A stretch of 64,000 nt of DNA, from positions 1,054,001 to 1,118,000 of the forward strand of contig OZ251238.1 in the NCBI GenBank assembly GCA_965240325.2, given 5' to 3'. The notes under the pieces are model-generated. The model searched no databases. It had not been told where the DNA came from and saw only the letters and a program-made list of their open reading frames with translations. Positions 1 through 6,424 of the stretch are shown here, in pieces. Every line of letters starts with the position of its first letter. Within the stretch, counting starts at the first letter, position 1. The DNA is from Rebecca billardiae RCC1528. Its lineage: Eukaryota > Protista > Haptophyta. The position numbers and the translations under genes were made by a program.

Positions 1-1903
1 CCCGCGATTGCCTGTATGTCGAATCAATGCGACAGCAGCACAACACCTGATCCGCCGTGAGTACAGCTGAATAATCCATTATTATTAAATGGCATGCGTG
101 TGCAGCTGCTCGTTTATTTATAGTTCAGTCGTCAGCAGCTTCTGTCCTGCCCGTATTAATTACGCGATAACAGTCAGAATTAGGCACGCCGTACTCGGTA
201 ATGCGACTACGCTGCGTGATATTTTAAAAAGCCTGCATCTCTAGTCACTGGGACCATGGGCATGGTCGGACTGGCTTCGTCTGGCATCCGCATGGTGCAT
301 GCTGACGTCATCTATGAACTATCGCAGCATCATGTATTCTGTGAGGTGCGCTGCTCGTCCGCGCCACTCCGCGAGAATCAGCCAATGACGGCAGTACAGC
401 CGCTGATCCTTGGCTGAAGGTTTCGCGGCGAGTGGCGGCAATCAGGCGCACCGCACGATGCATTGTTGTGCCCACGGAATGCGCATGCAATGGAAGCAGT
501 GGACCAGGCAGCTGCGCCGCCTAGCCCTCGTCATGGAAGAATGCCACCTGCGCGGAAGGCATGGGCGATGGTGACGCAAGCGCATTGGCAATGAGAAAGC
601 GCGGTGCCCCAGCTTCCCGCGCGGTGCGGTCTGCGCACACACCTGTCTGCACAGAGGTGGTGGAGGTACATTCCCACCCCCTATCGCGTGACATCTAGCA
701 CCGGAGATGCTCAGCCGCTCGAGTGAGTGGTAGACCGTCTCCGAGCTGCACCGTCGGGCATTGTTGTCGTGTGCTGCGCATCTTGCAGCGACGTCCAAAG
801 TCGACAGCGACGCGACATGCGGACGCTGGTGGTGGTAGGTGTTGGTCTCGTCGAGCCCCTCACGGATGCGCGCGTCGCTATCGGCACTTGCCCAGGCGAC
901 AGGCCCAGGAGCCGCTCCGCCGCCGTCATCCGCATGCATCGAAACCTCGGTGGGCCGTCTCGCCGCCGACGAAGGCCGTGTCCGCCCTTTTGGCCGGTGG
1001 CCAACCGGATTTCCCACCGAAGTCATTATTACGGGCGGCACAGTTTAGTCAAGTACGACTCTTCGGCCGCAGGGCGCATCAAACCGGCATCAAACTCCTT
1101 TTGCCCAACTCCTTTTCGACGATCAACCGAGGTGAATCATTCAAGTTCAATTCTGTGAACCGTGCAGGAAGACGGCTTCTGCGCAATGTTCTGGCCTTCT
1201 GGATCCTCGCGTGACTAAATCTGGTGAGAAAAGCTACTACTGTACCGTATAGAGGGGGGTTGGAACTCACCGTTGGAAGTTGGCGCCCAGCGCTCACTTT
1301 CACTTGCTCATCAGTTCACAGTTGCCAGACGGGCCAGGCGAACTAAATAAACGCCGTCGAAAATTATCAGACTGCCTTATCACAGCAGGCTGGCATTGGC
1401 CATTGCCGCGCGCCGCCCCTCACTCGCCGTCACTCGGGCCCGTCAGGCGGCTCATAACCAATATACATATAATTGCGACGGCAGTGCCGCGCCCCGGCCC
1501 CGGGCCCCGTGGCTGCCGGCCGCGATTGCGGCGCGCGCATTGTCGATTCACATGTCACGATTGTGCGGGCGTCGTCGTCGACGTCGGCCCGCGGCCGGGG
1601 CCCAGGCCCCGAGCCCGGCGAGTCCGGCCGGACGGCCGGCCGCCGCGCAGGCTGACTGGCGTCGCACCGTCATAATCTATAGGCCTAGCACTGAGACTCT
1701 GCATGAGACATGAGTGGCTATGCATCGGAAGGTCAGCCTTGAAGTAGATTTAGTAGGGGACGTCCAGCACTCGCAGCAGTCGCTCAGGCACCGATAGAGT
1801 CGTACTCGTAAGTCGAAATCTAATTAATTAATATCGTATATGAGCAGTACAGCTGAATATGTGGATCCGGATCCGACACTTTCAACCGTATCCGCGACTC
1901 TCA

Positions 1904-2120
<217 letters not shown>

Positions 2121-2243
2121 ATGTACGACGTATAATAATAGCTAGACAAGGCTCGATCATCAGTCGCCTATATACTCAAATAATAGTACGAATAATTATA
2201 CCGTAGTTATTGTCATAATACGACTGTATTGATCAGTACTACC

Positions 2244-3410
2244 TCACGCCAGCCCGCGCTCGAGGAAGGCGCTCCGCAGCTCGCGGTGGTCCTCCGGCAC
2301 CGTCTCGAGCAGCACGGCCCAGCGCTCGGCGGCGGCCTCGCGCTCGGCGAGCACCGCGGTGGCGACGGCGCACGGGTCGACCATCCCGCCGTCCAGCGAC
2401 ACCGTCGGCACCTGCACAAGCATCTCGAGCAGGAACTCGTCCGCGACATGGTACTTGCCGTCGCCCTCGAAGCCTGATCCGTGCGCGCGGAAGAAGCGCT
2501 CGAGCCACGCGCGCGAGGGCGCGGAGCGCTCGTCACGCTCGAGCGCGCGCATGGCGCGGCGCACGCCCTCCCGCGTCGCGAGCCGCTTGAGCAGGTCGTA
2601 CGTGCCCCCGCGGAACGCGCTCTTGTCCGTGCCCTCCGCCTCGTGCGCGAACGTCGGATAGAGCGCTTTCCGGCGCGTGTCCTCGCCCTCGGCCGCGATC
2701 GCGTCGTACGCGCGGCGGATCTCGGCGTTCTCCTGCGACATGCGGCGCAGGTCGGAGGACGCCTCGGCGGCCACGTCCGCCGCGCAGTCGAGCAGCCGCA
2801 TCGCCAGCCGCTGCGGCACGATGTCGAACTCCATCCGAAGCACTTTCGGCTTCATGTACGGGTTGTTCTTCGAGCCCGCGCGGTTGCGCGCGACTGACTC
2901 GACCGTGATCGAGGTGGGCGGCTCCTCGAGCAGGCGGTGCACGTAGCTCCTCCACGGGTGCGCCAGCCCGTCCAGCCCGTGGTACTGCCCGATACCGGGC
3001 AGCTCGAGGAATCGCTCGAGCCAGTCGGCCGTCGGCGTGTCGCGGCACGTCTGCAGGTAGAACATGAGCGTCTGCAGGCTGCGCTGCAGCACGAAGCGCT
3101 TGATCAGCTCGTCTTCGTCGATCGGCTCGGGCTGGTCCGCGAGCATCGCCACCACGCCGCGCCGGCGCGACTGAGCGGCGGCGGCGCGCGTGCGCCTCGA
3201 GAGCTGGGAGTCTGCCGCCGCCATCGCCGCCGCCGCTGCCGCCGTCGACGGCGCGGAGACACGGACGGCGTGGAGGGCGGCGGCGCGCGCGGGCAAAGCG
3301 GACGTACCCGGGCGCACCGCAAACGACACCGCCGCGCGCACCGCGACGGGCGCCAACGCCGCCGCCGCCCAGAGCGCGCGCCACCGAGCGGAGTGGCTGC
3401 GCGGGCGCAT
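2244..3410 (-). CDS. Putative plastid-targeted protein with two tandem RbcX-like helical domains
   Basis: Intronless ORF, ATG at 3410. Signal peptide ending ..AAVS-F, then an Ala/Ser/Arg-rich transit-like stretch. Two internal modules share a 'WLERF' core and 'PQRLAMRLL..VAAE' / 'PCAVATAVL..REAAAE' helices that resemble RbcX. Gene is solid; family call is tentative. Confidence 0.75.
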   Translation of the reverse strand: MRPRSHSARWRALWAAAALAPVAVRAAVSFAVRPGTSALPARAAALHAVRVSAPSTAAAAAAMAAADSQLSRRTRAAAAQSRRRGVVAMLADQPEPIDEDELIKRFVLQRSLQTLMFYLQTCRDTPTADWLERFLELPGIGQYHGLDGLAHPWRSYVHRLLEEPPTSITVESVARNRAGSKNNPYMKPKVLRMEFDIVPQRLAMRLLDCAADVAAEASSDLRRMSQENAEIRRAYDAIAAEGEDTRRKALYPTFAHEAEGTDKSAFRGGTYDLLKRLATREGVRRAMRALERDERSAPSRAWLERFFRAHGSGFEGDGKYHVADEFLLEMLVQVPTVSLDGGMVDPCAVATAVLAEREAAAERWAVLLETVPEDHRELRSAFLERGLA

Positions 3411-4661
3411 CTCGGCAACGTGTGCTGCTGCCGAGACGCGCGCGGACCGGCGTGTGTGCACCACCGGTCGCTCTCCGGATCAGAGACGGTTGCCGCGCCA
3501 AAAAACGGATAACCGTAAAGAAGAAATGGTCCGCGGCCGTCCGGCCGTGCTGCGCAAACGATGTCCTCGCCAGCACTCAGCAGCGCTCCCTCTGTCCATC
3601 CAGCGCCGTGACCATCCCGCAAGGTTCCCTCACCTTCTAGACGACGATCTCTGGTTCCAGCATAGGAGACAGTCGAGGTCGGAGGTGTGGCCCGTGCGAG
3701 TGACGGAGTGACCAGCCCGCAGCCGGCCAGTCCTCGTGTGCGGTGTGGCGCCACCTGTGCAGCACGACTTCGGGTTCCGGCATAGCTTCCCCCTGGCTGT
3801 GCTCGTGCTGGCTAACCTGACTGACGCGCATCAGTCGGCTGTGACGTCTGACACGATCCGCGGTAAACTATACGAATCTTACGAACGCGCCCTGGTGCCG
3901 GCCAGGCGCCGCAGACGCACTGCGAGCGAGCCAACCGCGCCGTGCACTGGCCGGTTGACCCACAAGTGGCCATACGGCGAGACGTCACCAGGCACCTGTC
4001 GCACGAGTCGCACGTTAATTAACGTGGTGCGCTCCCTCCGCCCCCCTGCCGATTCAGACTTGATGCCCGGCGCCACACCTGACACACACCAGCTCACTAC
4101 CCCAAGGCCCAGATGTGAGAGGTAAAATGGAGTCTGGGGTGCCGGCCGGAGCCCATCAAGCAGACACGCCTGCGGCTGCTGCAGCCGCAACGTGCTGGCA
4201 ATGACACAGGGGACCAAGACCACCCCGTCCGCACCAAGCCATCCGCGATTGTGGTCATCCAGCCGCCCGAGGAGCCAGCCTCGCACGAGCAGGCGGACGC
4301 CCGACCACCTGAGCGCGGCACCTGGCCGCAGCACATGCCACACAACGGTGGCGCAGCTGCCAAGGGCAAGGCAACGCAGAAGGACGCAATCGTGCGGCCA
4401 GCGTCGTAGCGGGCATCCATCCAACCCACACGGGAGGCCCGCAGCCGCCTAGCAGCCCAGCCCAGCCCGTCACAGTCAGTCACAGCACTGGCTCTCGTGC
4501 AGCATCCGCACCCTGCGAGCACGGAGAGTTCAGGACGCAACGCAGGGCGGCGCGCGCGCGGCAGACGAGCCAGGCCGTCACCGCCCGCCTCCACAAGCCG
4601 GCCCCCCGCGCGCGGCGCGGCGCGCGCCGCGACCCTCGGGTCGAACCGGGACGCACTGCTG

Positions 4662-5235
4662 GCACGCCGTGGCGCAGCGCGACGGGCGCGGCGCGGCGAG
4701 GTCGCATGTGCTTCCCCCGGGGGGCTGAGCGTACTGGCTGAGGCCCCCACGCGCGGCGGACTCCGTGCGCGCCCCGCCTGATGTGCGCGCGGCGCGCAGC
4801 CGCAGCGCGCGGCGGGCCGGTGCCGGTGCGTATTCGGTCTCGTCGGCACCTGTGCTCGGTCTCGTCAAAGCATTACCCGCATCGGCCCCCAGGCGGCCCC
4901 CTTTAGCGCGGTCCTCGACAGCGAGGCCAACCATCGACGCTTGGAAGCCTACGGCCGCGCCAAGCGACGGCGCCGAGCGGGCGCGCGCGCGCGGAACGAG
5001 AGGTAGACTCCCGTAGCGTGCCTCCACACCCCGCCCGCGCCAGCGCACCCGCTCGCGGCTCTCTTTCCGCTCCGCGGCGGCGCGCGGCACCCGAGCCGCA
5101 CTGAACGCGTGCACGGCGCACGCCGTGGCGCGGCGCGACGGGCGCGGCGCGGCGCGCTCGGAGTGAACTCGCCCGGGGCTCCGAGCGTACGGGCCGACGC
5201 GCCCGCGCGCGGCGCGCTCCGCCCGCGCCCCGCCA
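4662..5235. repeat. Degenerate direct repeat pair of about 120 bp (about 4662-4778 and 5118-5235)
   Basis: Both copies read gcacgccgtggcgc.gcgcgacgggcgcggcgcggcg...gagcgtac.ggc.ga.gc.ccc.cgcgcggcg..ctccg..cgcgccccgcc. Confidence 0.7.
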
Positions 5236-6424
5236 AATGCGCGTGTTATCACGAGGCGCGGGTCGGCACGCTCGGGTGCGGCGGCGCGGCCGTCGCGAGG
5301 GGTCCCCGCACTTGGAGGCGGACTGGAAGCGTCCGGACTCTCCTTGATGTTGCACAAAGCCGCGGGGGCGGCACGGTTAAATCCGGGCGTGCCCCCCCCG
5401 CGGAAAAAGCAGCTGCAGGTCCACGACTCCGAAACTCGCCATCACCGAAAAGTGATGATGCGATAAGTGATAACGACCGCAGCAGGCTCGTGGCAGCTGA
5501 CTAATCCGCAGCCGGACTGCCAGAGGCCGCAGACGTCCTCCATGCTTCGCACCAGCCGGATCGCTGGCCACAGGAAGCCAGGATCCAAGGCCAGGCCCAG
5601 GCGCGAGGACACCGCACCTTCGCCTGTCTGATGTGGGAAGCGGGCGGCTCCAGTCGCTGCTGCCACGCGCCAATATGTGAATAGTGAATACGGCGGTGGA
5701 TGGCAGACTCGGCTTGGACTTGGTGCCGCCCGAAGCCCCGCATCTCTCTTATCCCAAGGAGCACTCGTACCCAGATAAGACAGGGGTCCAGAGTGGCTTT
5801 TTGGAAACAATATCATCATATGTACATAATCTAGTCCACACAGTGGACGGCAGTGATCGTTGACGTTGGCACTGGGCGGAGGGCTCTGGCCAGGCTGACG
5901 GATTAGTCAATATTAGAACGGGTTGAGTTCACTCTCATTCGGGAGGATTCGCCGATTCGCGAGCGCCCGTCGTCGCGCGCCCCTTCATGGCCTTCATCAG
6001 CATGCTCTTGGTGACTTGGTCATTGCCACCGCCCGCACCGCCGCGCTGGCCTGCGTAGTGCGTGCACACGCCGGCCCTGATTTATTCTGATTCGATCTTG
6101 AGCCGTGATCGAAATTCTTATTATATATTCGACTACTGCTCTCTAAACTACTACTGTCTAATTCATTATAATTATAATAATAATAGACTCGGATCGGCAG
6201 TCGTCGCGCGTAGCTAGTCGGAGTAGAAGTAGTCAGAGTGAGTCAGACGGTCGATCGAGCTAGCTATTCGAGGCGCTCTGGGGCAGCGGTCAGCGGAACC
6301 CCGACTGGCAGTGGCAGTGGTGAGTGCCGAGTGGACGAGTGGACAGTGGGACCTCCCGACTGGCGCCAATAGTAGTGCCCTCAGAATTCTGATCGACGTC
6401 CGAGACCTACCAGGACATTAGTCA

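Follow-up and report, generated by a model that had tools for sequence, protein, structure and literature searches.

A tandem RbcX-like protein of red-lineage algae, encoded in the nuclear genome of the haptophyte Rebecca billardiae

In cyanobacteria, green algae and plants the chaperone RbcX helps to assemble Rubisco. Here we describe a nuclear gene of the haptophyte Rebecca billardiae RCC1528 whose product consists of two tandem RbcX-like modules behind a putative plastid-targeting leader. The gene lies in a stretch of 64,000 nucleotides of contig OZ251238.1 (C21:1054001-1118000 of a 72-Mb host assembly in 41 contigs), and this whole stretch is referred to below as the window and the gene product as the window protein. 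The features of the locus, in window positions and with the evidence for each, are the following.

2244..3410, minus strand: complete intronless coding sequence of the tandem RbcX-like protein, 388 amino acids, with a TGA stop codon at 2244-2246
3324..3410, minus strand: signal-peptide-like leader, residues 1-29, ending ...RAAVS/F with Phe at +1 (hydrophobicity and motif scan)
3126..3323, minus strand: transit-peptide-like stretch rich in Ala, Arg, Ser and Thr, residues 30-95 (composition)
2676..3125, minus strand: N-terminal RbcX-like module (N-module) with helices a1-a4, residues 96-245 (hhalign, PDB profile, Pfam on relatives)
2820..2915, minus strand: beta-hairpin insertion between a3 and a4 of the N-module, residues 166-197 (model strands, hhalign gap)
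2628..2675, minus strand: inter-module linker, residues 246-261 (weaker conservation, lowest model confidence)
2247..2627, minus strand: C-terminal RbcX-like module (C-module), residues 262-388 (hhalign, VIA-align, Foldseek, PDB profile)

The frame has its first ATG at 3410 and runs through 388 codons with no internal stop. The program-made list of open reading frames carries it further upstream, to a GTG at 3464; the ATG at 3410 is also the start chosen in a gene call from another assembly (P0001, 388 amino acids, 99% identical). The G+C content around the gene is 72–75%. Six homologues with identities of 52–99% can be aligned across the mature part of the protein, and every string quoted in an earlier note on this DNA, which had been made from the letters alone, is present in the translation of 3410..2244 on the minus strand.

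That note had described two internal modules, and their resemblance lies beyond chance. A BLASTP comparison of residues 91–229 with residues 251–388 gives an E-value of 4e-6 (31% over 67 amino acids), and hhalign aligns the N-module (alignment A2, 85 sequences) with the C-module (alignment A3, 121 sequences) over 118 columns with a probability of 99.0% and an E-value of 2.7e-18. Only one large difference separates the two: some 30 residues of the N-module (166–197) carry a family-wide RGGSxxNPY motif and are left unaligned by hhalign against the C-module and RbcX alike. Asn183 and Pro184 of this motif are kept in 97% of family sequences. Near-invariant positions elsewhere in the N-module are Q109, R110, Q113, H144, P199, E216 and D220-L221, and those of the C-module are R267, D272-L273-L274, P346, R357 and W364.

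Both modules are also homologous to RbcX, and each has the RbcX helix order a1–a4. When module profiles were searched against 177,635 distinct PDB sequences, all eight matches of the N-module were RbcX chains (best 2peo_A, E-value 5e-5, and 7xsd_5, 1.2e-4), as were seven of the ten matches of the C-module (best 2py8_A, 1.4e-3). The alignments are collinear in helix 1 (LQSYLTYQAV in RbcX versus FLTQRAVQT), in the W-L pair of helix 2 and in helix 4, where LALRIMTVREHIAEE faces LAxRILxVREQIAxEW. A direct comparison was made with an alignment of 17 cyanobacterial RbcX sequences of less than 72% identity (A5), the rbcX genes having been retrieved with a degenerate nucleotide pattern that encodes LQSYLTYQA, a string seen in the PDB alignments. 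In hhalign the N-module matches it with a probability of 96.0% and an E-value of 4.1e-9 (102 columns, RbcX positions 9–115), and the C-module with 97.3% and 1.6e-11 (97 columns, positions 9–110). Each module is nearer to its partner than to RbcX, which is expected from a duplication inside the red-lineage family.

RbcX was reached only by module-level profiles of 85–121 sequences. Neither the single protein nor a full-length profile of seven sequences found anything in Pfam and PDB searches; the window protein has no Pfam match even at an E-value of 10 or below, and its two modules taken alone have no RbcX match. A word search with the C-module alignment gave three matches, RbcX not among them. 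The Pfam family for RbcX (PF02341, gathering cut-off 27 bits) is matched by 30 of 63 two-module relatives (best E-value 2.3e-10), by 34 of 85 N-modules (best 4.4e-7) and by 13 of 121 C-modules (best 6.2e-5), and every other family in the Pfam scan of relatives is matched by at most four of them. Among ten relatives scanned singly the best, P0027, reaches 26.4 bits, just below the cut-off, which fits the lack of Pfam labels on database entries of this family.

The predicted structure leads to the same fold. A first AlphaFold model built from seven sequences was poor, with a mean predicted local distance difference test (pLDDT) of 61.5, and was superseded by a model (mb3cecf9e39ac) built from an alignment of 63 sequences (A4), which has a pLDDT of 94.5 and a predicted template modelling score (pTM) of 0.90. 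Both modules show the RbcX helix order in this model, with a beta-hairpin between a3 and a4 that is long in the first module (strands at model residues 71–78 and 95–102) and vestigial in the second. The least confident part is the linker of some 16–25 residues, where pLDDT falls to 65–74 around model residues 150–170 against values above 90 elsewhere. In a VIA-align search of 48,161 PDB representatives only five chains reach a Z of 8 or more and all are RbcX (3q20_B, 9.8; 4gr6_B, 9.6; 4gr2_B, 9.1; 2peo_A, 8.6; 5bs2_A, 8.5), the next chain scoring 6.4; the RbcX matches have root-mean-square deviations (rmsd) of 3.0–4.4 Å and cover 101–112 of 105–118 residues. Foldseek gave no significant E-value against the PDB for either model, and we therefore rely on VIA-align and the sequence profiles; in the Foldseek output only RbcX chains hold high probabilities (0.98 for 3q20_A, with a template modelling (TM) score of 0.65 by target). 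The RbcX matches of both programs are all located on the C-module of the two-module model. That model superposes on an independently predicted diatom homologue over 274 residues with a TM score of 0.83 and an rmsd of 3.1 Å, which, together with the pTM, indicates that the modules hold a fixed relative position. The RbcX likeness that the earlier note had read from a few motifs is thus found alike by module profiles against the PDB, by hhalign, by Pfam on relatives and by the fold search; the note had named the absence of any profile or structural similarity as fatal to its reading, and in the VIA-align comparison RbcX is the only match at a Z of 8 or more.

When 1.84 billion cluster representatives were searched with a profile, 580 clusters were matched at E<1e-3, and these make up the family; 361 of them remain at E<1e-10. 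The closest named homologues are KFE25_006915 of Diacronema lutheri (55% identity) and a protein of Pavlovales sp. CCMP2436, and there are homologues that share 52–62% identity with the window protein. All members that carry an organism name come from red algae (Rhodosorus marinus, Porphyridium purpureum), pavlovophyte haptophytes or diatoms (Stauroneis, Thalassiosira, Skeletonema, Cyclotella, Pseudo-nitzschia, Cylindrotheca), the named diatoms being non-model species only. Many diatom members contain long extra regions and reach lengths of up to 768 amino acids. Many members derive from MMETSP transcriptomes, and the family is therefore transcribed in other species. The red-algal proteins already contain both modules and the hairpin; the fusion is therefore ancient and predates the spread of red plastids. 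Occurrence in red-lineage algae had been proposed for this protein and is borne out by the host and by the named relatives. The family is not confined to secondary plastids, since the primary red algae Rhodosorus and Porphyridium carry it. Database labels read hypothetical or uncharacterized throughout, with one exception: the UniRef cluster of P0224 (Pseudo-nitzschia multistriata VEU38178.1) is named ‘Selenoprotein O’, apparently through an error of annotation, since the alignment of this protein covers 94% of the tandem RbcX-like profile.

Among red algae, haptophytes and diatoms, a doubled and diverged RbcX is thus widespread, below annotation thresholds. Two papers state that organisms whose Rubisco is of the red type lack RbcX (PMC9833100, PMC6508576), a statement that is thereby corrected. 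In the literature searched, which mostly did not extend to subscription journals, we found no description of RbcX relatives in the red lineage, and the only algal report of an ‘RbcX-like’ protein concerns the green alga Ulva.

The host genome contains two more tandem RbcX-like genes.

C13:2182449-2186255 (L003), open reading frame 1414-2556, minus strand: paralog with 33% identity to the window protein
C15:670871-675192 (L004-L006): paralog with 24% identity to the window protein, with a long N-terminal extension and a long insert rich in Ala, Gly and Glu between the modules

Both paralogs have closer relatives in other organisms than the window protein, and in both the reading frame is interrupted within the C-module, which suggests one intron in each gene.

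The earlier note had guessed that the DNA belongs to a red-lineage alga, and besides the affinity of the nearest homologues, from which the host is probably a pavlovophyte haptophyte, the plastid genes agree. The plastid contig (C41, 67957-71877) carries rbcL (488 amino acids) and, 97 bp later with nothing between, rbcS (139 amino acids); a ribosomal-protein-like open reading frame lies upstream of rbcL. The operon is thus of the red type and lacks rbcX. The host RbcL scores 960–995 bits against red-type structures (8bdb, 1bwv from Galdieria and the diatom 5mz2) and about 610 bits against green-type ones. A six-frame Pfam scan of the whole host genome for classical RbcX was empty at E-values of 10 or below, in a setting in which the control cyanobacterium was detected. 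RbcX binds the EIKFEF motif of green-type RbcL, and the tail of the host RbcL, ...WKDITFNYTSTD, retains the I-x-F-x-aromatic spacing of that motif.

The N-terminus of the window protein has the order of a bipartite plastid signal. A basic tip is followed by a hydrophobic stretch, ALWAAAALAPVAVRAAV, and by VS/F in the context ...VAVRAAVS/FAVRPG..., after which come about 60 residues, to around residue 90, that are rich in Ala, Arg, Ser and Thr and almost devoid of acidic ones. Residues 30–95 are without conservation across homologues and have pLDDT values below 50 in the first, full-length model. Relatives were examined with a simple scan, which looks for a region of Kyte-Doolittle hydrophobicity of at least 2.0 and then for the motif [ASGCT]x[ASGC][FWY]. 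A site of the small-x-small-aromatic (ASAFAP) type is a hallmark of import into secondary red plastids. A signal-peptide-like hydrophobic region is found in 43 of the 68 relatives that have an N-terminal extension, and 26 of these 43 carry such a site (ASAF, ACAF, CTAF, TTAF); the hydrophobic window of the window protein (residues 14–32) scores 1.95, just below the threshold of 2.0. The red-algal members P0009 and P0029 have no hydrophobic signal peptide (score 1.17). Taken across the family, the pattern in this simple scan, which is not a formal prediction, fits a protein of the stroma. The bipartite leader claimed for the window protein thus holds for it and for its relatives as far as appearance in such a scan goes; a lack of plastid targeting had been named as evidence that would tell against the idea, and the scan instead returned targeting-like leaders.

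How close is the window protein to known Rubisco factors? Taken module by module, it agrees with RbcX (2PEO, 3Q20, 4GR2, 4GR6, 5BS2) in the order of the four helices and in the long, kinked last helix, shares (Y/F)LTxxA in helix 1, W-L in helix 2 and LA.R.(L/M)..RE.IA.E in helix 4, and is likewise a small, cofactor-free helical protein, here with a putative plastid location. RbcX is a two-fold homodimer of chains of about 130 amino acids, with one central groove and two peripheral surfaces, whereas the window protein has two modules fused in one chain, and RbcX lacks the hairpin of about 30 residues, with its invariant NPY, that marks the first module of the family. RbcX occurs in the green lineage or in an rbcL-rbcX-rbcS operon with form IB Rubisco; the window gene, in contrast, is nuclear and the Rubisco of its host is of form ID. 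The window protein falls below the Pfam cut-off for RbcX and is therefore unannotated.

The eukaryotic RbcX-I and RbcX-II proteins (AtRbcX1, AtRbcX2, Chlamydomonas RbcX-IIa) are likewise nuclear-encoded, imported into plastids, diverged from the cyanobacterial form and present as several paralogs, and they are among the best structural matches to the window model (Z of 9.6, 9.1 and 8.5). Unlike the window protein, they have a single module, dimerize, serve green-type Rubisco and are recognized by Pfam. The Ulva protein UM003_0241 is an RbcX-like protein with a Rubisco-binding motif, located in the pyrenoid matrix (bioRxiv 10.64898/2026.07.16.738900). It resembles the window protein in being an algal RbcX derivative with added features, and it indicates that RbcX relatives can hold pyrenoid-associated roles, but it belongs to the green lineage and has a single RbcX domain and a C-terminal binding motif, with no tandem. 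Raf1, Raf2, BSD2 and the red-type activase CbbX serve the same general task, the biogenesis or maintenance of Rubisco, with unrelated folds, and no similarity between them and the window protein emerged from our general searches. Raf1 also brackets RbcL dimers.

The residues of the modules can be placed on RbcX individually. The W40-L41 pair of RbcX is retained in both modules (W130-L131 and W302-L303). In helix 4, R70 of RbcX corresponds to R205 of the N-module, and R75 to the near-invariant R357 of the C-module; at the R75 position of the N-module the window protein has Ala and the family consensus Arg. The segment E32-T33-N34-P35 is invariant in the 17 cyanobacterial sequences; in the family, only an R-D pair near N34 is common. 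In RbcX, Y17 and Y20 line the groove that holds the C-terminal peptide of RbcL. Both are invariant in the cyanobacterial alignment, and PDB entry 2pej is the RbcX mutant Y17A/Y20L.

The role that we favor for the tandem RbcX-like protein, with a confidence that is about evenly balanced, is that of a Rubisco assembly chaperone. To our knowledge, RbcX has no role other than Rubisco assembly. The protein would be carried by its signal peptide and then its transit peptide across the four plastid membranes into the stroma, where the two modules may pack like the two chains of the RbcX homodimer to form a single-chain, asymmetric ‘dimer’. It might then clamp newly folded Rubisco large subunits after their release from the chaperonin and stabilize RbcL dimers or L8 cores until it is displaced upon small-subunit binding, the client presumably being the red-type (form ID) enzyme. 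The two halves of a single chain can evolve separately, and the binding surfaces would therefore no longer be those of RbcX. Contact with RbcL would probably differ in detail and may use the conserved QRxxQ face of helix 1 together with the NPY hairpin. Co-folding with RbcL residues 445–488, the C-terminal 44, gave a score of 0.00 in runs without controls, a result that speaks neither for nor against binding. Form ID Rubisco has not been assembled in foreign hosts, a failure that has been read as a need for unknown chaperones (PMC9833100).

Several observations weigh against a chaperone role of this kind. Where RbcX has its groove tyrosines, Y17 and Y20, the N-module carries F106 and Q109, the latter being Gln in 90% of the family, and the C-module carries L277 and R280. 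The peripheral Q29 and E32 are not kept either: the N-module has Y118 and T121 there, and the corresponding positions of the C-module vary. In place of these residues the family has invariants of its own (Q109, R110, Q113, N183-P184, E216, D220, R267, D272, R357 and W364). The presence of three old paralogs in one genome, at 24–33% identity, suggests several clients or roles. Finally, in a bacterial form IC enzyme a hairpin of the red-type small subunit reportedly takes the place of RbcX (PMC9833100).

These observations are the substance of a competing explanation, which we consider somewhat less probable than assembly but a serious contender: the protein may be a true descendant of RbcX with another job in the plastid, acting on a different client or tethering or regulating assembled Rubisco, for example in the pyrenoid. 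The loss of the groove tyrosines and of the peripheral Q29 and E32 would be natural under such a change, and the new family invariants (QRxxQ in helix 1, the NPY hairpin, R267 and D272) point to a new binding surface. The deep divergence of the three paralogs and the long extra regions of many diatom members would also fit a changed role, as would the location of the Ulva RbcX-like protein in the pyrenoid matrix (bioRxiv 10.64898/2026.07.16.738900) and the reported dispensability of RbcX in form IC enzymes that have the red-type RbcS hairpin (PMC9833100). However, the parts of RbcX that are most conserved, LA.R.L..RE.IA.E in helix 4 and W-L in helix 2, are kept, all named members come from lineages with form ID Rubisco, and an alternative client is suggested by nothing in the data.

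That the protein has the RbcX fold but acts outside the stroma, in the endoplasmic reticulum or the periplastidial space or after secretion, is very improbable. The targeting assignment comes from a simple hydrophobicity and motif scan, in which the window protein itself stays below the threshold (1.95 against 2.0). Nevertheless, Phe occupies the +1 position after a small-x-small site in 26 of the 43 relatives with a clear signal peptide, the stretch after the site is poor in acidic residues and rich in Arg, Ser and Ala, and the absence of a signal peptide from the red-algal P0009 and P0029 is as expected of a stromal protein. Least credible of all is a convergence of common helical bundles without kinship, since the Foldseek E-values of 0.85 and worse, the VIA-align Z of 8.5–9.8, which the note of that tool places within the chance range for helical bundles, and the missing Pfam match of the window protein stand against structure-independent hhalign E-values of 4e-9 and 1.6e-11 from alignments that are collinear along all of RbcX, PDB profile matches that are almost all RbcX, Pfam RbcX matches to dozens of relatives when any other family has at most four, and five RbcX chains that lie more than two Z units above the next match.

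If the Rubisco assembly role is correct, a wider proposal can be made, which we put forward tentatively and regard as rather doubtful. The tandem RbcX family might provide the lineage-specific chaperone that has been missing for the assembly of form ID Rubisco. That the test hosts do not have it would then explain why assembly of the red-algal and diatom enzymes has failed in plants and Escherichia coli, and supplying the family together with the paralogs would allow such assembly. The best CO2/O2 specificities known to us are those of red-type Rubiscos. The genes described here form a short list of concrete candidates for co-expression with form ID Rubisco. They also offer a natural case in which a homodimeric chaperone has turned into a single-chain, asymmetric protein, a change fixed before red plastids spread.

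Three minor observations concern the surroundings of the gene and a contig of other origin. Contig L008 (JAAUUT010000063.1), labelled as a metagenome-assembled genome of Candidatus Gracilibacteria, carries a typical cyanobacterial rbcX of 134 amino acids (LQSYLTYQAV...), probably through a binning error. A Logan contig that is otherwise 99% identical (L007, run ERR14847148) lacks about 1.9 kb directly upstream of the window gene (3513-5400). We considered whether L007 could be a transcript with a spliced 5′ untranslated region joining approximately position 5401 to approximately 3513, but the junction lacks GT-AG and shows a shared CCG microhomology, and it is therefore read as a DNA insertion or deletion between strains; the gap looks like such a strain difference rather than an intron, and L007 is not taken as evidence of expression. 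A compound microsatellite, with a long (TA)n run and then a (CA)n run, lies at 1880-2125, downstream of the gene and about 120 bp from its stop codon, and L007 has a shorter, different version of it, with 87% identity across.

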